A stretch of 44,784 nucleotides of DNA. Origin: Octopus bimaculoides (lineage: Eukaryota). Below the pieces are notes generated by a model. It made no database searches. It saw nothing but the letters and a program-made list of their open reading frames with translations, and was not told the origin of the DNA. The position numbers were made by a program, and so were the translations under genes. The stretch is from the NCBI RefSeq assembly GCF_001194135.2, contig NC_068982.1, positions 125,005,332 to 125,050,115 on the forward strand, written 5' to 3'. Shown here piece by piece: positions 263-42,909 of the stretch (its first letter is position 1; every line of letters begins with the position of its first letter).

Positions 263-2324
263 CAGGGAATGGACATAATAATGCAATAACGAAAAAAATT
301 CACTGACCTAAGCATTGAAACTGTACTGTCCACTCATCTAAACAGGAACTTTACTCTCTTCAACTGTTCGTAAACATTTACATCATTCTTGGTGATGAAT
401 AATACTTAATTATAAGCTAATATTATCTCTTGACGCTTAAATAAATTGGAAATTGCAATTTCAAAATATTTTTACAATGTTTACTATGTTTTTCTGCCAC
501 CAATATACTGCCTAAATAAACATCGGTTCAACTAAAAGTTAAGCAAGGGTTGCTGGAGAAAATGAAGCTTTATTCACCAACAATCTACAGGCAAAAATGT
601 CGATTTTTGGTGAATGCTTTCACTTCTGCAGAAAGTAATTAATAATAAATCTATATATCACCCAAATGTGATAGGATCAATCGACTGTCATTTTCGTAAT
701 CATAGCTATCTGTCAATACATGAATGAAATGGAAACTTTGACGCATGGTCTTTCTCAATTGCATCGACAACGCAACTGAAGTGAAATAACTCTATGAACC
801 GAAACTGATTCTCTACTTTTCACTGTTTACTACAAGACCAAGGTATAAAAGTAACTGAGAATAAGATAAAGATAGCACGAAATATCCTTTCGTGCTATCT
901 CAGTTTATGTTTTCTATCTTCAACCTCTTCTTCTTAAGTACGCATATTTCTACAGCAGCAGAAAATAACCTGTTTAATCAAATGCAGCGAAGTAGCAGAA
1001 CGATATTATATACGGCAGGTATGGATAACTTTATCAATAGTTAATCATTCGAATTTATTAAAGCATGAATAAAATGTCCCTTGCAACAATAGTTGATTGT
1101 AGTGAATTGAACAGCTGTTTATTGGGTTTGGCAGCTGTTCTAAGAAGAGAGTGGGTGGTTTACCGAAATTGCTTATATTGCTTGCCATCTAAATGTTATG
1201 GCACATTTAATATTGCTGATTATCTCGGCTGCCCCAAATTCTCGATTCTTACGTCAGTATACTATCGATAAACCATACGTATGAAGCAAGATGTGTCTGT
1301 TTATCATTATTTCTTTAAAAATATATTGTGTTTAGAGTTACAATGATTGCACCAGGTGGAAAATTGAACGCAAGTTCATGGTGAAGCGAAGAATATTAAA
1401 TAAAAGTACATCAATGTTTTGGAATAATTAACTAACTTCACGATTCATCATCCGATTTGGTAAATCCCACGTACACACAGAGGACACGCATGATTATTTG
1501 AATTTCTGCAAGGATAGGAGGCAATTCCGGACACCTTTGATCATATTAGACAATTAGAACTCCTCAATGAAGCAACGGGTTTACAGTACTTACCAAAGTA
1601 ACGAGGGAGACTCCTACCGCGAATTTTCTAATCAGCGTTTCTAATTAGATTTTCAATGCCCGCTACAACATATATACTAACATTAACGTAACTACTGCTT
1701 TGCATGAGGACGGCATCTCTGGGTGTTAAACGTCAGGGATTAATCGTTCAGAGAGTTGTGAATGTTTGTTCTCATGTCGTGAGCATCGCACTGCTACAGT
1801 AATAAAAAAAAATGGCTAAAAGATTAATCGACCGATACTGCATTGCAGTCAGTTAAGCATTCATTGAATATTACATATTCCTGTTTTTCAGATGTGTCTG
1901 CGTCATTTTAGCAACCTGTGACGTAACGTTCTTTGTGGGTTTATTGGCTAACAAAAATGGTGATGGAACATGGTCACTCGTTGTTTACGTTCGTCCTTCA
2001 TTCTCTGAAGATGTTCATAATGTGGGTCCTGAGGTGGCTTATTAGATCAATATTAACATAAAATCCACGATTACTGTGAAGATACATAGCAGAATCAGGA
2101 CCCAGTGGGACTCTTGCATCCCGCGCAACCTTCTCCTCTTTGGTTCATTCGTTGTTAGAAATAGCAGTCAGATTCCACTCATATCACATTCTACCGTCTT
2201 TAAAATAAACGACAAATACATTATTATATAGTCTCAAATAAAGTGTGTCTGATAAGATGAAACGGTCATGACTCGAGTGACGCACTAAAAATCCTGCCAA
2301 CTCGCCACCTTGTCGGAGCCATTT

Positions 2325-2713
2325 GTTGTTGTTGGCACTCCGTCGCTTACGACGTCGAGGGTTCCAGTTGATCCGATCAATGGAACAGCCTGCTCGTGAA
2401 ATTAACGTGAAAGTGGCTGAGCACTCCACAGACACGTGTACCCTTAACGTAGTTCTCGGGGATATTCAGCGTGACACAGTGCAACAAGGCTGACCCTTTG
2501 AATTACAGGCACAACAGAAACAGGAAGTAAGAGTGAGAGAAAGTTGTGGTGAAAGAGTACAGCAGGGTTCGCCACCGACCCCTGCCGGAGCCTCGTGGAG
2601 CTTTTAGGTGTTTTCGCTCAACAAACACTCACAACGCCTGGTCTGGGAATCGAAACCGCGATCCTATGACCACGAGTCCGCTGCCATAACCACTGGGCCA
2701 TTGCGCCTCCACA
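2325..2713 (-). mobile_element. tRNA-derived SINE family A (OR1-like), full length with (CAA)n tail
   Basis: Minus strand TGTGGAGGCGCAATGGCCCAGTGG (A box)...GGTTTCGATTCC (B box)...GGAGTGCCAACAACAAC; near-identical copies at 14100, 29290 and 42435. Confidence 0.92.
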
Positions 2714-2724
2714 AAAGTGTGGGA

Positions 2725-2843
2725 TGCTTACAGCACCTAGGTTTCCCAAGCGGTCACCCATCTAAGTACTCACTAGGCTCGACGTTGCTTAACTTCGGTG
2801 ATCGGACGAGAACCGGTGCTCTCAGTGTGATATGGCTGTAAGC
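2725..2843 (-). rRNA. 5S_rRNA: Full-length 5S rRNA copy, probably a retropseudogene within a chimeric retroposon
   Basis: Minus strand GCTTACAGCCATATCACACTGAGAGCACCGGTTCTCGTCCGATCACCGAAGTTAAGCAACGTCGAGCCTAGTGAGTACTTAGATGGGTGACCGCTTGGGAAACCTAGGTGCTGTAAGCA. Box A (AGTTAAGC), box C (AGATGGGTGACC), perfect 9-bp helix I, then a TTTT terminator. Confidence 0.95.
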
Positions 2844-3414
2844 CGGAACCATTTAATAACGCGTAAAACAGTTAAAATTGACTCTTAATTTATTCCGTGA
2901 AATAAATTTAAAATGAATCTAGGAATTTTCTGAGGTATTTAAAGGCTAGGATAGCTCTCCCATACAGTAATTGCTCCAGTTTCAACAAACGATTTCAAAT
3001 CATTTACTAGATAAATGCAACTCTGAAATATGCATTATTCAGAAACTAAACATATTTGGACTTGAACGTAGATTGCTAGTCATATGTTTATGAATGATTC
3101 TATGAAAATAAGCGAGGCATAATAGGTTCGGTTGTTCTAATGTCTGTTAAGTGAGTAGTTCTCATACGGAAAGCGGATTTCACTGAAACTGAGCCATTTT
3201 ATTTTGGTTTAGTATATCATTGTTTATTATGTAAACCTTCAATTACGAAATCGGTTTTCACGCAGCAAACAGTAAAAAAAAAAAAATAAATTTAAAAAAA
3301 AGATCTTGACAATTACTTGGTGTGTTCGTAAAAAGTATATTCTCAGCTATTCTTCAACTTGCTAGTTCATCTTAGTATGCAACGAATTGACTTAATAGAT
3401 GGTTTTTGATTCAG

Positions 3415-3417
<3 letters not shown>

Positions 3418-3488
<71 letters not shown>

Positions 3489-3588
3489 TGTATGTATGTA
3501 TGTATGTATGTATGTGTGTATGTATGTATGTATGTATGTATCTATGTATGTATTATGTATTATGTATGCATGTATGTATGAATGTATG

Positions 3589-3680
<92 letters not shown>

Positions 3681-3745
3681 GTATGTATGCATGCATGTAT
3701 GTGTGTATGTATGTGTGTATGTATGTATGTATTATGTATGTATGT
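3418..3745. repeat. Compound (TA)n/(TATG)n microsatellite
   Basis: Read directly from the sequence. Confidence 0.95.
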
Positions 3746-4651
3746 ACACATGCACAAACATGATATTGAACCTATAGAGATACGGCTTACTTGGATGTAT
3801 GTATATGTAATAAATGGAGAACTAAATAGATATTTTTGATTATTGATTGAAGAAAATGTTGCAGCTAGCTCAGCTGGTTAGATTATATATATATATATTT
3901 TAAATACATCAAAAACTTCGTTTTTCACTTCCTCTAAAAATTTCCTCCAGACATTTTGAAATATATTTCAATCAACAACTAGAGGAAGGTGTATTTATTG
4001 ATTACAAACTCTACCCCTGCACATCTTTGATTAAAATCACAGTTTGTTTTTGATAACATCTTTTTTCCATTATTGATTTGATTTCCAATGTAAAAAGAGA
4101 AACAACGTAATTTTAATGATATAAACCGAACAAAATGTGGAAGCCAAACAAATTAAAGGCAGTAGATCGTAAGCAAAGTAGCATATTGATTATACAGATC
4201 GAATTAAAATTCGATTAAAGCATAATTTTCTTTTTAAAATGTAACTATTTTGTAAATATATTATTTTGCTTTGATTGTTTGATTTCCTAGGAAACTTGTA
4301 AAAAAAATGCTAAAGAATTCTTGTTCTTTATACTTTCTCATTCAGTGTCAATGTGAACTTGTGTGCGATAACACTGATGTATAAGAGTATTCACTGAATA
4401 TTGTTTGAAATTTTAATTTAAATAATTTAGAGTTTAATTATAAAAAAAAGCAGCCAGTAGGAAATTCGTGGCAATAACGGAATGGTATGGAATAGGACCA
4501 AAAAGAATAAAGATATCAGTTTCGTTAATTATTATCATTACCACTATGCCAGTGTTCAGAGAAAATCAGATCAAATACAAAGAATGGTATCATAATTCGA
4601 AATGGAAGCAATCACACAAGGGGAGATTTTTTTCTGTTTGTTAATATGATT

Positions 4652-6466: not shown

Positions 6467-7120
6467 NNNNNNNNNNNNNNNNNNNNNNNNNNNNNNNNNN
6501 NNNNNNNNNNNNNNNNNNNNNNNNNNNNNNNNNNNNNNNNNNNNNNNNNNNNNNNNNNNNNNNNNNNNNNNNNNNNNNNNNNNNNNNNNNNNNNNNNNNN
6601 NNNNNNNNNNNNNNNNNNNNNNNNNNNNNNNNNNNNNNNNNNNNNNNNNNNNNNNNNNNNNNNNNNNNNNNNNNNNNNNNNNNNNNNNNNNNNNNNNNNN
6701 NNNNNNNNNNNNNNNNNNNNNNNNNNNNNNNNNNNNNNNNNNNNNNNNNNNNNNNNNNNNNNNNNNNNNNNNNNNNNNNNNNNNNNNNNNNNNNNNNNNN
6801 NNNNNNNNNNNNNNNNNNNNNNNNNNNNNNNNNNNNNNNNNNNNNNNNNNNNNNNNNNNNNNNNNNNNNNNNNNNNNNNNNNNNNNNNNNNNNNNNNNNN
6901 NNNNNNNNNNNNNNNNNNNNNNNNNNNNNNNNNNNNNNNNNNNNNNNNNNNNNNNNNNNNNNNNNNNNNNNNNNNNNNNNNNNNNNNNNNNNNNNNNNNN
7001 NNNNNNNNNNNNNNNNNNNNNNNNNNNNNNNNNNNNNNNNNNNNNNNNNNNNNNNNNNNNNNNNNNNNNNNNNNNNNNNNNNNNNNNNNNNNNNNNNNNN
7101 NNNNNNNNNNNNNNNNNNNN
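6467..7120. other. Assembly gap (N run); further gaps at 11803-12370, 13599-13608, 19232-19397, 20711-21542, 22784-23441, 24946-25929, 32778-33555, 41467-41476
   Basis: Runs of n, most abutting microsatellites. Confidence 0.99.
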
Positions 7121-11333: not shown

Positions 11334-12451
11334 TTCTGCGCCTGTGAATATGTGCATGTGTGTATTTATGTATGCATTTGTTTGCGAGCGCCTTTGTGTG
11401 TATGTATGTAAGTGCGTGTTTTGTAGCATGCTAAATAATTCAGTGATACACTGCATTTACCTTTTGCAAGCATCTCAAAATATAATTTACAAATTATAAT
11501 TCAATTGTTGTGGTTTCTACATCACACGAATTTGAGTTAGAATTCTTTGTAATCAAATTCACAAAGTTGCATAATATTTTATCATTTTAATCTTTCTTAC
11601 AGTGATCAGAACATATGTGCATGTCTATGTGTATATGTATATTTATAAACATACATGCATACAATCATATATGCGTACAAACACAAGCATTTGTACGTAT
11701 GTATGTTTGTATACATATATACATATTATCATACATATATGCATAAAAATGCATATATATATACCTATATATGATTATATATATATATATATATATATAT
11801 ATNNNNNNNNNNNNNNNNNNNNNNNNNNNNNNNNNNNNNNNNNNNNNNNNNNNNNNNNNNNNNNNNNNNNNNNNNNNNNNNNNNNNNNNNNNNNNNNNNN
11901 NNNNNNNNNNNNNNNNNNNNNNNNNNNNNNNNNNNNNNNNNNNNNNNNNNNNNNNNNNNNNNNNNNNNNNNNNNNNNNNNNNNNNNNNNNNNNNNNNNNN
12001 NNNNNNNNNNNNNNNNNNNNNNNNNNNNNNNNNNNNNNNNNNNNNNNNNNNNNNNNNNNNNNNNNNNNNNNNNNNNNNNNNNNNNNNNNNNNNNNNNNNN
12101 NNNNNNNNNNNNNNNNNNNNNNNNNNNNNNNNNNNNNNNNNNNNNNNNNNNNNNNNNNNNNNNNNNNNNNNNNNNNNNNNNNNNNNNNNNNNNNNNNNNN
12201 NNNNNNNNNNNNNNNNNNNNNNNNNNNNNNNNNNNNNNNNNNNNNNNNNNNNNNNNNNNNNNNNNNNNNNNNNNNNNNNNNNNNNNNNNNNNNNNNNNNN
12301 NNNNNNNNNNNNNNNNNNNNNNNNNNNNNNNNNNNNNNNNNNNNNNNNNNNNNNNNNNNNNNNNNNNNNNATTATCTCGCAGTTTTTCGCACAGGATACT
12401 GAGCTTCATTCACAATTGTATCGAATTATGCATCTGTGTGTTTGTGCGTGC

Positions 12452-13530: not shown

Positions 13531-13672
13531 ATCTTGTAGTAGTAGTAGTAGTAGTAGATCTTGTAGTAGTAGTTGTTGTTGTTCTTGTAGTAGTAGTANN
13601 NNNNNNNNGAGGCGGAGCGGAGGAGGAAGACTGAAATTTTGTTTGGCAGAGGTATCAATACACACGCACGCA

Positions 13673-14099: not shown

Positions 14100-14466
14100 A
14101 TGGAGGCGCAATGGCCCAGTGGTTAGGGCAGCGGACTCGTGGTTATAGGATCGCGGTTTCGATTCCCAGACTGGGCGTTGTGAGTGTTTATTGAGCGAAA
14201 ACATCTAAAGCTCCACGAGGCTCCGGCAGGGGATGGTGGCGAACCCTGCTGTACTCTTTCACCACAACTTTCTCTCACACTTACTTCCTGTCTCTGTTGT
14301 GCCTGTAATTCAAAGGGTCAGCCTTGTCACACTGTGTCACGCTGAATAAGGGTACACGTGTCTGTGGAGTGCTCAGCCACTTGCACGTTAATTTCACGAG
14401 CAGGTTGTTCCGTTGATCGAATCAACTGGAACCCTCGACGTCGTAAGCGATGGAGTGCCAACAACA
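14100..14466 (+). mobile_element. SINE family A, full length with a small internal deletion
   Basis: tggaggcgcaatggcccagtgg...ggagtgccaacaac. Confidence 0.92.
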
Positions 14467-16340: not shown

Positions 16341-17035
16341 CCTCTCGAGATACACTAACCGGTCGGTCATGTGTAGCGGAAACAGAATCATGTGTACGTC
16401 TTCGTGCATATTAGGCATCTGTTTCAGTCGCTTTGCCCTGGTTTCATCTGATTCAGTTGCCCGTCTTTCTCTCTGCCGTTGTGCCTTTGCTGCTAAATTT
16501 TCTTTTTCAGTCGCATATCATATATAAATGAAAGCTCGTTAAAAACTATCTTGTTTAGCGTGCTAGAAATAGCATCGATCACATAGTTATAATTTTAAGG
16601 CTTATAGCGTTTCAAGTAGCCATACCAACAAAATTACTTCTTCATTAAAAAAAATTATACCGGTATATTAAAGAATTTTCATCTTATGAAAAATATTCAT
16701 TTAACAAACTCCGGACACTGATAATATTCCTGAAATTGTGTCTCGTATCAAGGCTGTTATTAAATTACCATTAATGAGAGACTGTTGCAAATAAAAACGT
16801 AAAATGTTACCTGCAACGAATTAATAGTGCTTATTATTAAACATTAAAATCTACTCCGCAATGAATGCAATGAATATTTAAATTTATGAAGAATTGGACG
16901 CAGTGATTGCAATGAATATTTAAATTTACGAAAAAATTCAATAAACCTCAGAAATCGAAATTATAGGAAATTTCTTAGAACATGAATCTATAAAAATATT
17001 TCCTGCTTTCTTTTAGTACTTTTAATAATTGTTAC

Positions 17036-17336
17036 GAGGGTCCCAGCTGATACGATCAACGGAACAGCTTGCACGTGAAATTAACGTGCAAGTGGCTGAG
17101 CACTCCACAGACACGTGTACCCTTCTCGTAGCTTTCAGGGAAATTCAGCGTGACACAGAGTGACAAGGCTGGCCCTTTGAAATACAGGTACTACTCATTT
17201 TTGCCGGCTGAGTGGACTGGAGCAACGTGAAATAAAGTGTCTTGCTCAAGGACACAACGCGTCGCTGTGAATTGAACTCACGACTTTACGATCGTGAGCC
17301 GAATGCCCTAACCACGAAGCCACACGCCTTCACTAG
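17036..17336 (-). mobile_element. CORE-type tRNA SINE family B (OR2-like) nested in the Helitron
   Basis: Head TGGCTTCGTGG/GAGTTCAATTC; CORE-like TGTGTCCTTGAGCAAGACACTT; 10-bp TSD taattgttac at 17026-17035 and 17337-17346. Confidence 0.9.
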
Positions 17337-18934: not shown

Positions 18935-19397
18935 GCGGCAGAAATGTTAGCCGCCGGGTGAAATGCTTTGCGGTATTTCGTCTGTCTTTATGTTCTGAGT
19001 TCAAATTCCGCCGAGTTCGACTTTGCCTTTCATCCTTTCGGGGTCGATAAAATAAGTACCGGTGAAATACTGGAGTCGATGTAATCGACTTAATCCCTTC
19101 TCCAAAAATTTCGGGCCTTGTGCGTAGATTAGAAAAGATTATTAATGATGCTGGATAAAGCGACGAGATGGCAGAATCGTTAGCACGCCGGGTGAAATGC
19201 TTAGTGGTATTTCGCCCGTCGCTACGTTCCGNNNNNNNNNNNNNNNNNNNNNNNNNNNNNNNNNNNNNNNNNNNNNNNNNNNNNNNNNNNNNNNNNNNNN
19301 NNNNNNNNNNNNNNNNNNNNNNNNNNNNNNNNNNNNNNNNNNNNNNNNNNNNNNNNNNNNNNNNNNNNNNNNNNNNNNNNNNNNNNNNNNNNNNNNN

Positions 19398-19494
<97 letters not shown>

Positions 19495-19572
19495 CATTAT
19501 TATTATTATTATTAAACTGCCGAGTTCGACTTTACCTTTCATCCTTTCTGGATCGATAAAAATGTACCAGTT
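18935..19572 (+). mobile_element. Family D SINE copies (one full, two partial around the gap)
   Basis: 18935-19145 complete; 19160-19231 head; 19515-19572 central domain. Confidence 0.85.
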
Positions 19573-20464: not shown

Positions 20465-20515
<51 letters not shown>

Positions 20516-20598
20516 CATCATCATCATCACCATCATCACCATCATCATCATCATCACCACCACCATCATCATCATCACCATCATCATCATCATTATTA
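20337..20598. repeat. Compound (ATT)/(ACT)/(CAT)n microsatellite
   Basis: Read directly from the sequence. Confidence 0.95.
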
Positions 20599-21639
20599 TT
20601 GAGGTGACGAGCTGGGAGAATCGTTAACATGCCAGGCAAAATGCTTGGCGTCTTTACGTTTGAGTTCAAACTCCGCCCTTACCCCGTCGCTTGAAATAGC
20701 TGACCTTGAGNNNNNNNNNNNNNNNNNNNNNNNNNNNNNNNNNNNNNNNNNNNNNNNNNNNNNNNNNNNNNNNNNNNNNNNNNNNNNNNNNNNNNNNNNN
20801 NNNNNNNNNNNNNNNNNNNNNNNNNNNNNNNNNNNNNNNNNNNNNNNNNNNNNNNNNNNNNNNNNNNNNNNNNNNNNNNNNNNNNNNNNNNNNNNNNNNN
20901 NNNNNNNNNNNNNNNNNNNNNNNNNNNNNNNNNNNNNNNNNNNNNNNNNNNNNNNNNNNNNNNNNNNNNNNNNNNNNNNNNNNNNNNNNNNNNNNNNNNN
21001 NNNNNNNNNNNNNNNNNNNNNNNNNNNNNNNNNNNNNNNNNNNNNNNNNNNNNNNNNNNNNNNNNNNNNNNNNNNNNNNNNNNNNNNNNNNNNNNNNNNN
21101 NNNNNNNNNNNNNNNNNNNNNNNNNNNNNNNNNNNNNNNNNNNNNNNNNNNNNNNNNNNNNNNNNNNNNNNNNNNNNNNNNNNNNNNNNNNNNNNNNNNN
21201 NNNNNNNNNNNNNNNNNNNNNNNNNNNNNNNNNNNNNNNNNNNNNNNNNNNNNNNNNNNNNNNNNNNNNNNNNNNNNNNNNNNNNNNNNNNNNNNNNNNN
21301 NNNNNNNNNNNNNNNNNNNNNNNNNNNNNNNNNNNNNNNNNNNNNNNNNNNNNNNNNNNNNNNNNNNNNNNNNNNNNNNNNNNNNNNNNNNNNNNNNNNN
21401 NNNNNNNNNNNNNNNNNNNNNNNNNNNNNNNNNNNNNNNNNNNNNNNNNNNNNNNNNNNNNNNNNNNNNNNNNNNNNNNNNNNNNNNNNNNNNNNNNNNN
21501 NNNNNNNNNNNNNNNNNNNNNNNNNNNNNNNNNNNNNNNNNNGGTACAGGACGTCAAAAAAAAACGTGGACAAAAAAGGAACGGGAACGTAAACAAAGCA
21601 CAAAAAACGAACTTTTTTTTATATATATATACTTTAAAT

Positions 21640-22783: not shown

Positions 22784-23441
22784 NNNNNNNNNNNNNNNNN
22801 NNNNNNNNNNNNNNNNNNNNNNNNNNNNNNNNNNNNNNNNNNNNNNNNNNNNNNNNNNNNNNNNNNNNNNNNNNNNNNNNNNNNNNNNNNNNNNNNNNNN
22901 NNNNNNNNNNNNNNNNNNNNNNNNNNNNNNNNNNNNNNNNNNNNNNNNNNNNNNNNNNNNNNNNNNNNNNNNNNNNNNNNNNNNNNNNNNNNNNNNNNNN
23001 NNNNNNNNNNNNNNNNNNNNNNNNNNNNNNNNNNNNNNNNNNNNNNNNNNNNNNNNNNNNNNNNNNNNNNNNNNNNNNNNNNNNNNNNNNNNNNNNNNNN
23101 NNNNNNNNNNNNNNNNNNNNNNNNNNNNNNNNNNNNNNNNNNNNNNNNNNNNNNNNNNNNNNNNNNNNNNNNNNNNNNNNNNNNNNNNNNNNNNNNNNNN
23201 NNNNNNNNNNNNNNNNNNNNNNNNNNNNNNNNNNNNNNNNNNNNNNNNNNNNNNNNNNNNNNNNNNNNNNNNNNNNNNNNNNNNNNNNNNNNNNNNNNNN
23301 NNNNNNNNNNNNNNNNNNNNNNNNNNNNNNNNNNNNNNNNNNNNNNNNNNNNNNNNNNNNNNNNNNNNNNNNNNNNNNNNNNNNNNNNNNNNNNNNNNNN
23401 NNNNNNNNNNNNNNNNNNNNNNNNNNNNNNNNNNNNNNNNN

Positions 23442-23802: not shown

Positions 23803-26046
23803 CAGAAGAAAGTCCGGGGAGAGAAAAAGAAAGAGAAAAAGAAAGAGAGGAAAGGAAAAGAGGAAAGAAAGTAAGAAAAGAGAGCAGGAAAAATACACAC
23901 GTGGATCACATCACATGATAATTGTGGATTTTAATGACAAGAGAGTACTTGTTGCTATGTATGTACGTATGTGGACGTATATGTGGGGGGCATACACACA
24001 TACATACATACATACATACATACATACGTACATACATGCATACATATAAGGTTAGTAGAGTTGGAGGTTAATCGTCTAAGGGATAAGAACATCTGTTTTA
24101 CTACCAGTATAATTACCTATGTTAACTCTGGGCATTCATGTACAAGCATATTATGCTCATAGGATACAGGAAATGACAAAGATAAACGTGAGTTTATCAG
24201 GAATCAAATTTTAATTTAGCAGAAAATGGAGAAATCTTGATCAACAAAAATTGACTAACATCGATTATAAGTTTTTAATACAAAACTTTATCCCATCTAA
24301 TAGTCGTTTCTGCTTTTAATGTCCTACGATGTTGCCATTGAATATTCTGAGAATAATATTCATCATATTTTGTAACACATGCGATCTGGAACATGGAGCT
24401 TCATCAGACTGAAGAAAAATACATAAAGAAAAGAAAAGAAAAGAGGAAAAGCCTCGAGAAGAAGAATGAAGGCTTAATATATTTAAATCATACCATTTTG
24501 TGGTGTAAGGCTTCAGGACGTTAACGTCTGCCCTCTGTCGGATTCCCAGACATGTTTCTAGCTCTTTGGCCGTAACCAATGAGAAATACTGACGAGAACC
24601 TACAACTCTGGACAGAATTAATGAAAGCCGTAGCTTTAACTAAAACGCAGCCAACAACATTGACTGATGTGTACCATTAGACCACCAGGTCAGAAAAAAT
24701 TACAGCGGTATCAGCGCCAAGCAGTGTTCATGCATAAATGGACTTTAGGTTTGAAACATGTCTCGGAATCCGACAGGAGGCAGCACTGGACTGATGTAGT
24801 GTTTTTTTTAGCCATAAGAGAGAATTTTTTCTCCACAGGAGCTGCAGTGAATTTGCCTATAGAAGTTGAAATATGTCACCAACATATTTTCACTAACCTG
24901 AAATTCTCTTATGTCTAAACACTGCCTGGCGCTGATATTGCTATANNNNNNNNNNNNNNNNNNNNNNNNNNNNNNNNNNNNNNNNNNNNNNNNNNNNNNN
25001 NNNNNNNNNNNNNNNNNNNNNNNNNNNNNNNNNNNNNNNNNNNNNNNNNNNNNNNNNNNNNNNNNNNNNNNNNNNNNNNNNNNNNNNNNNNNNNNNNNNN
25101 NNNNNNNNNNNNNNNNNNNNNNNNNNNNNNNNNNNNNNNNNNNNNNNNNNNNNNNNNNNNNNNNNNNNNNNNNNNNNNNNNNNNNNNNNNNNNNNNNNNN
25201 NNNNNNNNNNNNNNNNNNNNNNNNNNNNNNNNNNNNNNNNNNNNNNNNNNNNNNNNNNNNNNNNNNNNNNNNNNNNNNNNNNNNNNNNNNNNNNNNNNNN
25301 NNNNNNNNNNNNNNNNNNNNNNNNNNNNNNNNNNNNNNNNNNNNNNNNNNNNNNNNNNNNNNNNNNNNNNNNNNNNNNNNNNNNNNNNNNNNNNNNNNNN
25401 NNNNNNNNNNNNNNNNNNNNNNNNNNNNNNNNNNNNNNNNNNNNNNNNNNNNNNNNNNNNNNNNNNNNNNNNNNNNNNNNNNNNNNNNNNNNNNNNNNNN
25501 NNNNNNNNNNNNNNNNNNNNNNNNNNNNNNNNNNNNNNNNNNNNNNNNNNNNNNNNNNNNNNNNNNNNNNNNNNNNNNNNNNNNNNNNNNNNNNNNNNNN
25601 NNNNNNNNNNNNNNNNNNNNNNNNNNNNNNNNNNNNNNNNNNNNNNNNNNNNNNNNNNNNNNNNNNNNNNNNNNNNNNNNNNNNNNNNNNNNNNNNNNNN
25701 NNNNNNNNNNNNNNNNNNNNNNNNNNNNNNNNNNNNNNNNNNNNNNNNNNNNNNNNNNNNNNNNNNNNNNNNNNNNNNNNNNNNNNNNNNNNNNNNNNNN
25801 NNNNNNNNNNNNNNNNNNNNNNNNNNNNNNNNNNNNNNNNNNNNNNNNNNNNNNNNNNNNNNNNNNNNNNNNNNNNNNNNNNNNNNNNNNNNNNNNNNNN
25901 NNNNNNNNNNNNNNNNNNNNNNNNNNNNNGGTTGTAATGTTGCAGCATATTATGTTATATGTATGTTTGATTTGATATAGATTCTAATTGTTAATACGTA
26001 TACTTGCATAATAATGCTTACACTTGCATAATACTATTGATATAAA

Positions 26047-28341: not shown

Positions 28342-29289
28342 ATATATATATATGTTGTTGTACTTGGGGATGGTCATATTGCCAGTTTAGTCATATATAT
28401 ATAAATGAACAGCTGCTTTATATTTTACAATAAATGGAACACGTCACCGTTAATCTAATCGACCTCAATACATGATCAGAACTTATTTCATCGACCTCTG
28501 CAAAATTCAGACCATATAACTTCATGCTATTGTCCCATATAACAGACAAATATACATACAGACAGACAAAATATAGTTTTATATTGTATTGTTCCATGTG
28601 CATGTGTATGCATATTTTGTATGTTTACCTGCAAAATATGTCGTTGCATTTTTGAGTGAATATGTAGAATGAACGGACAGTCATACACAAAAATCATCGG
28701 AAACCAATAAGATATAAAAACACTTTTGCTATGACTACATTGAATAAAACTAATGATTATTTTGTATGAACGTCACCAGTTGGTTATAGAGACACGTGTT
28801 TACAAAACCTGTAGCTGACAAAATAACCAGTCATTTGTAGCTATGCTGGAATATAATAACAATATTTCTATCGTTGAAAATTACAGTCGAAATATTCGTT
28901 CTTGTTATTTCAGTACATTGATTTCTAACTTAAGCATAGAGCCATGTATTTTACAGACGGGAAATTAAATATGTGGTAGTCATGCTTTTTTCAAAAAGCT
29001 TTAGTGATCAAAGTGAAAAAGCGTGTCTTCAGCTAAGCAATCAGAAGCACGTTTCGGAACCAAACCCACCCTGTAGCTCACGCTCTTGAGTATTCATCCA
29101 TTGTAGTAATAGTTTTTTACACAGCTGCAAATACTTCAGATTTTAGAGAAAATAGGAAATGGTGTAGCCTTTTCCAGAAATAAATTTATTGCCCAAACGG
29201 AACTAAAATTACTGTAACCAATTTCAAAATTTATTTGTAAACTATGGCAGTCACTTTCTGACATTTTATTCCTATGTACAATTATATGG

Positions 29290-29697
29290 TGTAGGCGCAA
29301 TGGCCCAGTAGTTAGGGCAGCGGGCTTGCGGTCATAGGATCGCGGTTTCGATTCCCAGATCGGACGTTGTGAGTGTTTATTGAGCGAAAACACCTAAAGC
29401 TCCACGAGGCTCCGGCAGGGGATGGTGGCAAACCCTGCTGTACTCTTCCACCACAACTTTCTCTCACTCTTACTTCCTGTTTCTGTTGTGCCTGTAATTC
29501 AAAGGGTCAGCCTTGTCACACTGTGTCACGCTGAATATCCCCAAGAACTACGTTAAGGGTACACGTGTCTGTGGAGTGCTCAGCCACTTGCACGTTAATT
29601 TCACGAGCAGGCTGTTCCGTTGATCGGATCAACTGGAACCCTCGACGTCGTAAGCGACGGAGTGCCAACAACAACAACAACAACAACAACAGCAACA

Positions 29698-29728
<31 letters not shown>

Positions 29729-29740
29729 CAACGACAACAG
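29290..29740 (+). mobile_element. SINE family A, full length, with tail expanded into (CAA)/(CAG)n
   Basis: tgtaggcgcaatggcccag...ggagtgccaacaacaac. Confidence 0.93.
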
Positions 29741-29989
29741 CTTCTTTACCAGTCTTAAAAGTCTTCAAGATCTTTTGTCTTTTTTTAAAACTCTAACACT
29801 TTATTCTTGATCAATAACAAATAATCGAACCATCAAGACCTTAGTAATGTCGCTAGCTTGGTGTATTACAGAAGACATTTCTATAAAGTGGTCAATACCG
29901 ACAGGAAACTCATGCGTCACTACGTTCCAATTTGCTTTCGCAATGTTCTTAGATTTCATCAGAGCGACCACTTCAGAATTGCTAACAAC

Positions 29990-30052
29990 GTTATGATGGA
30001 CAATGACAGTAAGCACGGCGACTATGTTGATGACGATGATGATGATGATGAC

Positions 30053-30095
<43 letters not shown>

Positions 30096-30495
30096 GATGA
30101 TGATGATGATGAGGAGGAGGAGGAGGAGGATGACGATGGCAATGATTACGATAATGATCATAATGACGACGACGACGACGACATCGATAATGATGATGAT
30201 GATGACCTTAAGGATGACGATGATGAAAACGACAATGATGACAGCGATGATTACGATGATGATCATGATGACAACGACGGTAATGATGATGATGGTGATG
30301 ATGACGATTAAGACGATGATTGTGATGACGACAATGATTACGATGATGAAAATAATGATAACGAAGACGACGATGTTGATGTTCATGATGATGATGATGG
30401 TGATGATGGTGGTAATGATGATAATAATGGTGATGGTGGTGATGATGATGATGACGATGATGATGATGATGATCATCATCATAATGATGATAGCT
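29990..30495. repeat. Degenerate (GAT/GAC)n microsatellite of about 500 bp
   Basis: Read directly from the sequence. Confidence 0.93.
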
Positions 30496-30641: not shown

Positions 30642-30762
<121 letters not shown>

Positions 30763-32601
30763 ATTAACAGAATGTGAGCTTAAAAAATGGAACTGAGTTA
30801 TGAGGGAGTGTGTTGGGTATGATGAAGAACTTATTTCTAAACGCAATATAGTTCACTGTGTTATCGATTTAACATAATTTCATGTCGTGTATCGATTTAT
30901 TGGAAAATAATCTACTGCGTTTATCATGAGATGCATTCACGGGGTCTCTTAAAGTACATCTTGGGCGTTTTCTCTAATTATTGCTTGGTGATTTGAGGTG
31001 ATTTGAGATAAATAAAACGGAACTAATAGGATTAGTTTTAAGGTAAAGAGAAACTTTAAATTTCATCGATTGAAAGCAAGGTAAAGGAATGTTTGTTATT
31101 TGAAGAAAAAAATTGTCTTTGATATTTTTTTTTTTATCTCTTGTACTATAAAAGCTTGAAGCAACTCACCGATTCCGCTAGTGGTATCAATGCACCAAAT
31201 AATTGAGATATTAGTAACCGCAATAATAAAAGTAACGAAAGCAAGAATAATAATAACAGCTACTGAGAAATCAACAATATCAAAAACTGCAAACATCGGC
31301 CACAAAGAAAGGAACATGGGAAACATTCAAAATATTTTTGTCTGATCTCTGTTAAGTTGCTTTGTATAGAAAATAGCTCTACCATATTCATTGACGGCAG
31401 TGTCTGCCTCTATCGTCAATGTAGCGTTGGACTAACATAGTGTTGGTAACATATGAATATTTCTCAGAATTCCGGTCCTCACAAACCACTTTGTTTTATT
31501 GTCACCGACACATCATATAATAACATCGGAAACATCGGTAACCAATTCCTTCTCCTCCAACGCCGCCGCCTTTTGCTTTTAAACTTTGTGATTTTATCAT
31601 AAGAAAAGAGCAAATACAATTAATATCGATCTGGCGGGGGAGTAAATGTCTTAAGTGTCGTGAGTCCGATAAAATATTAATATCCGTGGTGACTGATTTT
31701 GATTCAAATGTGTTTAGTAATACTCTACTAGTGAAACCACTTGGGCCTGCCTCAGGCGAGGAAATAAACGGTTCTATGGCACAATATTTTGTCCCTTTTG
31801 TTTTTTGACGTTTAGGGTTCGGTTTAAGAAATATTTGGTAGCTATTTCTAGTAAATCAAAAGACCGCGTAAATGTTCGTCTTCGTTGTATGTGTGTTTGT
31901 TTCCATTGCAGCGTCTTCTGGAATGTCGACAATGGAGGCTTTCGATTTGCTAAAAAAAAATGCATAATTTTAAATGTGTGTGAATTTTATATGATTTTTC
32001 TAAAAAAAATGGGTGATTTTCCTCATTACCATGCAAGAAAGTTTGAAAATAAATCTAGTGAAAATTTTAAATACTTCTAGTGGCTGGAAGAATTTTAAAA
32101 AGATCCAGAAGCCGTGAGGTTTGATATGGAGGTAGACATACTGCCATGTCTAATAATAAATAAGAGGGTTTAAAGCATGTTAAACTTGTCCAAAAACTCT
32201 CGCGAAGCAAAAAAGAAATATTTGTATATAAACTATGGCTGTTTTCTCGTTAGTAAAGAGATAAGAAAGGAAAGGAACAAAATATTTTGTTTATATTTTC
32301 CTTTCGTTTTATTTTTACATTTGCCAGGAGAGGGCGCTAATACTTGTCACTTTAAGAACCGACTGCGCTAACACACATATCGAGATTATTAGCACCTGTT
32401 CTCTAAATAAAAGGGCCATACTTAACATATTTATTTTCATCGTAGGGGTAAAATGTCAAATAAGATAATATTTATCTTGTAAAGTGATGTTTGCTATAGA
32501 ATAGAATTTACTTTTGTTGTATTTATTTACTTCCCTGTTTTTTTTTTGTTGTTTTTTTTTTGTTTCATTTGTTCAGTATTCTAACCTAATAAACGTTTTA
32601 G

Positions 32602-32713: not shown

Positions 32714-33628
32714 GTGACACTGGTATTATATATTAGGTTTTGTGTGTAAACGTCTCCATATATACTAGCCCCTGCACNNNNNNNNNNNNNNNNNNNNNNN
32801 NNNNNNNNNNNNNNNNNNNNNNNNNNNNNNNNNNNNNNNNNNNNNNNNNNNNNNNNNNNNNNNNNNNNNNNNNNNNNNNNNNNNNNNNNNNNNNNNNNNN
32901 NNNNNNNNNNNNNNNNNNNNNNNNNNNNNNNNNNNNNNNNNNNNNNNNNNNNNNNNNNNNNNNNNNNNNNNNNNNNNNNNNNNNNNNNNNNNNNNNNNNN
33001 NNNNNNNNNNNNNNNNNNNNNNNNNNNNNNNNNNNNNNNNNNNNNNNNNNNNNNNNNNNNNNNNNNNNNNNNNNNNNNNNNNNNNNNNNNNNNNNNNNNN
33101 NNNNNNNNNNNNNNNNNNNNNNNNNNNNNNNNNNNNNNNNNNNNNNNNNNNNNNNNNNNNNNNNNNNNNNNNNNNNNNNNNNNNNNNNNNNNNNNNNNNN
33201 NNNNNNNNNNNNNNNNNNNNNNNNNNNNNNNNNNNNNNNNNNNNNNNNNNNNNNNNNNNNNNNNNNNNNNNNNNNNNNNNNNNNNNNNNNNNNNNNNNNN
33301 NNNNNNNNNNNNNNNNNNNNNNNNNNNNNNNNNNNNNNNNNNNNNNNNNNNNNNNNNNNNNNNNNNNNNNNNNNNNNNNNNNNNNNNNNNNNNNNNNNNN
33401 NNNNNNNNNNNNNNNNNNNNNNNNNNNNNNNNNNNNNNNNNNNNNNNNNNNNNNNNNNNNNNNNNNNNNNNNNNNNNNNNNNNNNNNNNNNNNNNNNNNN
33501 NNNNNNNNNNNNNNNNNNNNNNNNNNNNNNNNNNNNNNNNNNNNNNNNNNNNNNNGTTACATTCATATTGTTTCATTTGCTTTTGATTTGTAAATAAATG
33601 TATATCGGTTTCGGTTCACACATGCGCG

Positions 33629-41063: not shown

Positions 41064-41476
41064 CTTGTACTGATATCCTGGACAAGATATTAAACTGCAT
41101 CCGGTGGTACGGATTTACCTCGTGAATATAAACATTTTATAATAATGAGTTTGGATTGGTTTGGATTGGAATTTCTATGTTCAGTCCACTGCAAGATGAA
41201 GGCCTCGGTATGTTCTCTCCACTGACGGTGATTTGATGAGCCTGATCTGCTACACTGACTCGACATGGCTTGGCAGAGGGATGCAGTTTTTATACTCATA
41301 CCCAGGAGTAGTTAAGTCAATTACATCGACCCTCAGTGCTCAATTGGCCCTTATTTTATCGACCCCAAAATTTAGGAGTTTTGGGGAGTGTGGGGTTTCT
41401 CCTCAGCCACTACTACACCCGGATCCATTTGGATTTCAAATGGTAGTACCTATCAATGTAAGAGACNNNNNNNNNN

Positions 41477-41665
41477 AATTCAAAGGGACCAGCCTTGTCA
41501 CACTGCTGTGTCACGCTGAATATCCCCGAGAACTACGTTAAGGGTACACGTGTCTGTGGAGTGCTCAGCCACTTGCACGTTAATTTCACGAGCAGACTGT
41601 TCCGTTGATTGGATCAACTGGAACCCTCGTCGTCGTAAGCGACGGAGTGCCAACAACAACAACAT
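41477..41665 (+). mobile_element. SINE family A/B 3' module following a gap
   Basis: aattcaaaggg...gacggagtgccaacaacaacaac. Confidence 0.9.
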
Positions 41666-41684
41666 AATAAATGTTATACACATG

Positions 41685-41915
41685 AAAGAGGCGACCACGT
41701 TAGCACGCCGGGCGAAATGCTTAGCGGCATTTCCGTCTGTCTTTATGTTCTGAGTTCAAATTCCGCCGAGGTCGACTTTGCCTTTCATCCTTTCGGGGTC
41801 GATAAATTAAGTACCAGTTCGAGCTGAGATCGATGTAATCGACTTAGTCCCTTTGTCTGTCCTTGTTTGTCCCCTCTATGTTTAGCCACTTGTGGGCAAT
41901 AAAGAAATAAGAAGA
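41685..41915 (+). mobile_element. SINE family D head and central domain with an alternative 3' tail
   Basis: Canonical up to aatcgactta, then gtccctttgtctgtccttgtttgtcccctctatgtttagcc. Confidence 0.85.
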
Positions 41916-42159: not shown

Positions 42160-42313
42160 TGTGGCATGGTTACTCATTTTTACCAGCTGAGTGAACTGGA
42201 GCAACGTAGAATAATGTGCTTTGCTCAAGAGCACAACGCATCACCCGGTCCACGAATCGAAATAACAATATTACCATCATGAGTGCAACACACCTAATCA
42301 CTAAGCCACGCGC

Positions 42314-42318
<5 letters not shown>
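42160..42318 (-). mobile_element. SINE family B head plus CORE fragment
   Basis: Homologous to 17170-17336. Confidence 0.75.
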
Positions 42319-42352
<34 letters not shown>

Positions 42353-42434
42353 TGCATGCATGTATGTATGTGTGTGTGTATGTATGTATGTTTGTGTGCA
42401 TGTACGTGTGTGTAACTATGTATGTATGTATGCG

Positions 42435-42812
42435 TGTGGAGGCGCAATGGCCCAGTGGTTAGGGCAGCAGACTCGCAGTCGTAGGATCGCGATTTCGATT
42501 CCCAGACCGGGCGTTGTGAGTGTTTATTGAGCGAAAACGCCTAAAGCTCCACGAGGCTCCGGCAGGGGGCTGGGGGTTGGGTTTGAACCCTGCTCTATTC
42601 TTTCACCACAACTTTCTCTCACTCTTTCTTCCTGTTTCTGTTGTACCTGTATTTCAAAGGGTCAGCCTTGTCACACACTGTGTCCCCGGGGACTACGTTA
42701 AGAGTACACGTGTCTGTGGAGTGCTCAGCCACTTGCACGTTAATTTCACGAGCAGGCTGTTCCGTTGATCGGATCAACTGAAACCCTCTTCGTCGTAACC
42801 GACGGAGTACCA
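42435..42812 (+). mobile_element. SINE family A, full length, inserted in a (TATG)n tract
   Basis: A/B boxes; atgtatgtatgtatgcgtgtg on both flanks, consistent with a TSD. Confidence 0.9.
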
Positions 42813-42834
42813 CGAAGATGTATGTATGTATGTA

Positions 42835-42909
<75 letters not shown>

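Follow-up and report, generated by a model that had tools for sequence, protein, structure and literature searches.

Chimeric retrogenes made by long interspersed nuclear elements (LINEs) combine a full-length small cellular RNA at the 5' end with a retroelement at the 3' end, the two being in the same orientation, directly fused, and flanked by short direct repeats. Template switching is their accepted origin. Examples of this Buzdin type include U6–L1, 5S–L1, and U3–L1 in mammals and WEIRD–MGL and WEIRD–Mg-SINE in Magnaporthe, and most reports of such retropseudogenes concern mammals and one fungus. 5S ribosomal RNA (rRNA) is a partner in 10.5% of 253 human chimeras, each of them unique and not propagating, and in most of the human 5S/L1 chimeras the 5S is antisense and truncated, at position 46 or 90. 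Here, we describe a locus of Octopus bimaculoides at which a 5S rRNA copy is joined to a short interspersed nuclear element (SINE). It lies in a stretch of 44,784 nucleotides (nt) of contig NC_068982.1 (positions 125,005,332 to 125,050,115 of the forward strand; assembly GCF_001194135.2), the whole of which is called the window below. That the two parts were inserted together, in one event of target-primed reverse transcription, is well supported. The most likely explanation is one accident during reverse transcription, of a kind already known, and nothing indicates that the locus represents a new mobile-element family.

Another group of elements that invites comparison consists of the 5S-headed composite SINEs, namely SINE3, AmnSINE1 (of the Deu-SINE subgroup), the 5S/transfer RNA (tRNA) SINEs of megabats, and HaSE3 of Helicoverpa. 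As at the octopus locus, a 5S sequence comes first, and the body and the tail are those of a tRNA-derived SINE fused downstream. Their origin, too, has been proposed to involve template switching. The tRNA part has been partly lost in AmnSINE1 and replaced in HaSE3, which has only the body and tail in common with HaSE1. These families are multicopy and use the 5S sequence as a promoter, whereas the octopus locus is a single copy in the window, has both of its parts intact, and carries a terminator between them. It is at most a raw first step toward such an element.

Anatomy and insertion of the 5S–SINE unit

Read on the minus strand, the locus consists of a 5S rRNA copy, a trailer that ends in TTTT, a tRNA-type SINE, and (CAA)4, all arranged head to tail. 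A pair of direct repeats, read as a target-site duplication, brackets the whole. The features are as follows, with "family A" denoting the SINE family to which the copy belongs and Pol III standing for RNA polymerase III.

2854..2844, minus strand: upstream copy of the target-site duplication, AAATGGTTCCG; adjoins 5S +1 and is identical at 10 of 11 nt to 2314-2324
2843..2725, minus strand: 5S rRNA copy of 119 nt, read as the retropseudogene portion; RF00001, 104.7 bits
2724..2713, minus strand: 5S 3' trailer TCCCACAC plus TTTT, the latter read as the Pol III terminator of the source gene
2712..2323, minus strand: tRNA-type SINE of family A, full length; 2.6% off the four-copy consensus
2700..2690, minus strand: A box of the SINE, TGGCCCAGTGG; fits TRGCNNAGTGG, read from the sequence
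2657..2646, minus strand: B-box-like motif of the SINE, GGTTTCGATTCC; equals GGTTCGANNCC plus one extra T, read from the sequence
2334..2323, minus strand: (CAA)4 tail of the SINE; the same tail is found in the copies at 29289-29677 and 41477-41662
2324..2314, minus strand: downstream copy of the target-site duplication, AAATGGCTCCG; shares its first two A's with the tail

The 5S copy is not truncated. In Rfam, it covers positions 1 to 120 of the model (gathering score, 38; E = 4.7e-22), and the similarity begins precisely at +1 (2843). Every helix is present, the only blemish being two adjacent noncanonical pairs, both in helix II. By this alignment, the last 5S nucleotide is the leading A of "ATCCCACAC" as it was written in a preliminary description of the locus, and the 12-nt trailer that follows is made up of the 8 nt of TCCCACAC and the TTTT (2716..2713). 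The latter, at positions 128 to 131 of the 520-nt unit, is the sole sense-strand run of at least four T's in it. Could this be a functional 5S rRNA gene? This candidate was rejected: an Rfam scan finds no other 5S in the window, there is no array, and the similarity begins at +1 directly after the duplicated target. Mollusc 5S genes have a TATA-like box near -28 as an upstream promoter element, and none is present at -28 of this copy.

The SINE part runs from GTGGAGGCGCAATGG (2712) to the tail, and its alignment with three further copies in the window, at 29289-29677, 14101-14466, and 42435-42812, extends from end to end. The upstream flanks of these three are unrelated from within 1 to 2 nt of the common start, at which the SINE of the composite begins as well; because of this divergence, the latter is taken to be full length. 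The label "tRNA-type" is based only on the A and B boxes, since neither ARAGORN nor the Rfam tRNA model makes a call at the SINE head. At the junction (TTTT/GTGGAGG), no spacer separates the TTTT from the first SINE nucleotide, with an ambiguity of at most 1 to 2 nt. The junction sequence is GCTGTAAGCATCCCACACTTTTGTGGAGGCGCAATGG, and the 5S 3' flank with its terminator is TCCCACACTTTT. With both parts complete, two entire Pol III transcripts meet at the junction, the final nucleotide of the 5S transcript adjoining the initial nucleotide of that of the SINE.

How many insertions does the unit represent? Since the first two A's of the downstream repeat are also the last two of the tail, the unambiguous duplication is 9 nt (8 of 9 identical), with a maximum of 11 nt. 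To estimate the chance of such a match, 200,000 pairs of non-simple positions were drawn at random with the spacing of the unit and a slack of ±4 nt on both sides, and 148 of them (7.4e-4) matched at 10 or more of 11 nt. Simple sequence was excluded from this test, and a looser Monte Carlo estimate, inflated by microsatellites, was not used. Around the SINE alone, there is no flanking duplication, the best candidate being ACACTT and ACAAAT (4 of 6), and no comparable repeat brackets either the 5S alone or the 5S plus its trailer. Separate duplications for the two parts were therefore rejected. The flanks of the unit are unique in the window, which thus holds no paralogous empty site.

Taken together, the single duplication that brackets both parts, the lack of separate ones, the start at 5S +1, and the end in the SINE tail argue for one insertion event. 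On these points, the preliminary description holds: it had reported a full 5S from +1, a trailer with TTTT, a SINE head, and a (CAA)n tail, flanked as a whole by repeats matching at 10 of 11 nt, and had concluded, from a SINE without a duplication of its own, that the 5S and the SINE were retrotransposed as one unit. The inferred first-strand nick site on the plus strand is CCATTT/AATAAC. APE-type LINE endonucleases prefer TTTT/AA, and the AT-rich octopus site (ATTT/AATAA) resembles this preference. Base pairing is possible between the TTT primer end and the A's at the end of the RNA tail, which would account for the 2-nt ambiguity.

Against the background of the Buzdin type, the unit has a full-length small RNA as its 5' part (5S from +1) and a tailed retroelement as its 3' part (the SINE with (CAA)4), on the same strand and directly fused. 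One short pair of direct repeats surrounds the whole chimera, and the parts have none of their own. What is absent is the random 5' truncation of the 3' part, which is a typical feature rather than a mechanistic requirement: the 3' partner of the Buzdin type is a truncated LINE, and here it is a full-length SINE. The locus differs further in its cephalopod host and in a tail of (CAA)n rather than poly(A). Compared with the human 5S/L1 chimeras, its 5S is in the sense orientation, complete, and still provided with an unprocessed trailer and U-run. The Buzdin type is the closest known kind of chimeric retropseudogene, and the locus would be a cephalopod case of it, in which the junction is end to end and a 5S precursor was captured.

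Possible routes of joining

On balance, we lean toward reading the locus as a single chimeric retropseudogene, the one-off product of a template jump. In such a scenario, a LINE-encoded reverse transcriptase would have taken an ordinary family A SINE RNA as its first template, starting at the nick CCATTT/AATAAC with the (CAA)n tail and proceeding all the way to the 5' end of this RNA. The enzyme would then have jumped to the 3' end of a nearby 5S primary transcript, captured untrimmed with its 8-nt trailer and terminal UUUU, and copied it to +1. Integration of the joined cDNA would leave one target-site duplication of 9 to 11 nt. The two RNAs would accordingly have been joined by end-to-end jumping and not as a pre-existing fused RNA, and the locus appears to be a decaying copy that arose once and belongs to no propagating family.

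Why would a trailer and a terminator be retained? When Pol III terminates, the nascent transcript is left with the U-run of its own terminator at its 3' end. A 5S primary transcript would carry exactly the trailer seen here, provided that the terminator of the gene lies about 8 nt past the mature end. In other molluscs, a T-rich stretch is found a few residues beyond the 5S coding region. The preliminary description had taken the retained trailer and the four T's as grounds for favoring transcriptional read-through over template switching. That preference is reversed here: because the nascent 5S transcript ends in this very U-run, its retention is not evidence against template switching. A U-run that directly abuts SINE nucleotide 1 is what end-to-end template jumping predicts, and read-through explains it only by coincidence. 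The R2 element of Bombyx has been shown to jump in this manner in vitro, producing one cDNA of complete templates joined 5' to 3' end with an overlap of 0 to 2 nt. The octopus junction is likewise end to end, with its ambiguity of 1 to 2 nt at most; the difference is that jumping is a biochemical property of the site-specific R2 enzyme.

Several points weigh against this reading. That TCCCACACTTTT is the native 3' flank of octopus 5S genes is a presumption. The 5' end of the SINE is set from four copies only and is uncertain by 1 to 2 nt. Typical chimeras have a 5'-truncated 3' partner, whereas this SINE is full length, and next to the mostly antisense, truncated 5S/L1 chimeras of humans, a sense, doubly full-length product is atypical. 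T4 is a weak terminator in some systems, which lends read-through some probability. Finally, the absence of further composite copies is established within 44.8 kb only.

Transcriptional read-through would begin from a 5S gene with a family A SINE directly downstream; Pol III would ignore the TTTT, and the fused RNA would be copied from the SINE tail. The trailer and TTTT do resemble a genomic 5S 3' flank, a single duplication is compatible with the retrotransposition of any fused RNA, and T4, the minimal Pol III terminator, can leak. Yet this route requires a SINE in the same orientation whose first nucleotide falls 0 to 1 nt from the last T of the 5S terminator, an arrangement of which the model predicts nothing and which should be rare beside a given 5S gene at the SINE density of the window, roughly one per 7 to 10 kb. 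The polymerase must also pass the only T4 run of the unit, and reverse transcription must be primed internally at the tail of a longer transcript. Moreover, past the (CAA)4 tail, there is no relic of a duplication belonging to the SINE at its source locus. We consider read-through rather unlikely. Less probable still is the ligation of a 5S precursor to a SINE RNA by an RtcB-type ligase before retrotransposition, as in the U6/L1 chimeras, where a retroelement RNA is joined in the sense orientation to a Pol III transcript with a terminal U-run and the product is retrotransposed. Ligation, too, joins RNAs directly, end to end, and in the sense orientation, and the 5' partner does not lose its terminal U-run. 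The substrates of RtcB are a 5' partner that ends in a 2',3'-cyclic phosphate, a modification not normal for 5S rRNA, and a 3' partner that begins with a 5'-OH, in U6/L1 usually a cleaved, truncated L1. The octopus 3' partner is full length, and as a primary SINE transcript it should bear a 5'-triphosphate, which strongly lowered ligation in vitro.

Could the unit instead have arisen in two steps, with a SINE landing without a duplication beside an older 5S pseudogene or orphan gene, or the reverse? An imperfect repeat of 9 to 11 nt is short, and duplication-free insertions do occur. Such a history would have to attribute to chance a repeat expected at about 7e-4 even with the slack allowed, together with boundaries that fall exactly at 5S +1 and at the tail end, the lack of a duplication around either part, and the missing spacer between the U-run and SINE nucleotide 1; it is about as improbable as ligation. 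An assembly artefact, in which a short-read assembler fused a 5S read path to a collapsed high-copy SINE, is conceivable in a draft scaffold that has nine N gaps and a highly repeated SINE. A false join would not create matching duplications on both outer flanks, and the unit itself is free of N's, with none within 3.6 kb and the nearest at 6467. This explanation is the least credible of those considered.

Relation to composite SINE families

Does the locus belong to, or found, a propagating family of 5S-headed composite SINEs of the SINE3, AmnSINE1, or HaSE3 type? The preliminary description had proposed a candidate new 5S/tRNA composite SINE, and the architecture is certainly suggestive. AmnSINE1-type SINEs and HaSE3 have been proposed to originate in this way, with 5S becoming fused to a tRNA-derived SINE at its 5' end. 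The whole 5S is kept and is well conserved relative to the Rfam consensus, so its internal control region (box A, IE, and box C) should be kept as well, and the unit retains the same tail as other family A SINEs, which a partner LINE may recognize. Against this, the window contains one composite only, and its remaining three full-length SINEs carry no 5S upstream. The TTTT separates the 5S promoter from the SINE body, so there is no uninterrupted Pol III unit from head to tail. This internal terminator would halt most transcripts begun at the 5S promoter, and transcription driven by the A and B boxes within the SINE would yield an ordinary SINE RNA that lacks the 5S. A retroposed 5S promoter should be weak, since upstream elements such as the TATA-like box are left behind, and the human chimeras are unique and do not propagate. 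The duplication mismatch, the 2.6% divergence of the SINE from the local consensus, and the two helix II mispairs fit neutral decay.

We therefore regard membership in, or the founding of, such a family as improbable, and the proposal of a new composite SINE is unsupported given the single copy, the internal terminator, and the flanks of the other SINEs. Equally doubtful is an unrecognized octopus 5S-headed family caught at its birth, with leaky T4 termination permitting transcription and recopying. A new family is, in short, not shown and is disfavored, with architecture alone speaking for it.

Searches for relatives of the unit covered a protein collection, metagenomes, and viral contigs, the latter two being without relevant DNA. 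In a collection of 5.8 billion proteins, an open reading frame (ORF) of 77 amino acids that spans the junction matched only 5S-derived ORFs of unrelated organisms, and a second junction-spanning ORF, of 47 amino acids, had no match. Looking up ORFs of the window by exact match led to no contig. A scan for a 5S 3' end followed within 0 to 30 nt by the SINE head gave 0 matches in metagenomes, a collection in which no octopus DNA turned up. When the 5S 3' end was sought by itself in metagenomes, four loci came up; they contain no 5S and are chance matches. Viral contigs yielded 0 matches to the SINE head and to the 5S 3' end, and a literature search by sequence strings found no match. No partner LINE was identified in the window.

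What, then, does the locus tell us? There is no sign that it has a function, and it opens no long-standing question. Its value lies in the unprocessed trailer of the 5S precursor, the preservation of which records the species of RNA that was captured. The locus also has the architecture that has been proposed as the first step toward the AmnSINE1 and HaSE3 composites and thereby illustrates how such families could start. With the terminator still parting promoter from body, it illustrates as well why most such accidents found no family.

Other SINE copies and the window

Besides the four full-length copies of family A, the window contains two additional partial ones. None of the four full-length copies has a T4 run within the SINE, compared with 74% of composition-matched shuffles that contain one. 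When the SINE was used as a six-frame translated query, 11 proteins matched at 60 to 98% identity; 8 are annotated as Octopus bimaculoides, and these are SINE pieces caught in gene models. The matches bear out the octopus origin of the DNA.

Individual copies have peculiarities of their own. At 29289-29760, the (CAA)n tail of a family A copy runs into about 80 nt of (CAA)n(CAG)n, a microsatellite apparently seeded by the SINE tail. The copy at 42395-42900 lies within a (TATG)n/(TG)n microsatellite and has a duplication of about 21 nt (ATGTATGTATGTATGCGTGTG), far longer than the 9 to 11 nt of the composite. The 3' half of a family A SINE (41477-41662) directly follows a 10-N gap, and its truncation may be an effect of the assembly. 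The sequence after it, at 41663-41810, resembles the head of yet another tRNA-like repeat (...GTTCAAATTCCGCCGAGGTCGACTTTGCCTTTCATCC...).

A second SINE family is represented at 17035-17334 on the minus strand. It has a different tRNA-like head (GTGAAGGCGTGTGGCTTCGTGGTTAGGGCA...) and a body of its own and then carries a module of about 160 nt that it shares with family A, corresponding to 2504..2356 of the composite, at 87 to 89% identity. A fragment of its head, 75% identical, is present at 42171-42319. The common module shows that heads and modules have been exchanged between SINE families. Such swapping of modules among SINE RNAs evidently takes place often in this genome; the literature ascribes it to template switching, and it speaks for the template-jump reading of the composite.

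As for the remainder of the window, nine N runs (6467-7120, 11803-12370, 13599-13608, 19232-19397, 20711-21542, 22784-23441, 24946-25929, 32778-33555, and 41467-41476) show it to be a gapped draft scaffold. Because of these runs, the very low guanine-plus-cytosine content and the long overlapping "ORFs" in the N intervals are artefacts. The ten longest non-N ORFs were without any Pfam domain, and the window looks noncoding. Long microsatellites occupy 3419-3746 ((TATG)83), 19398-19514 ((TTA)39), 20466-20593 ((ATC)43), 30024-30491 ((ATG)156), and 30647-30763 ((AC)58).

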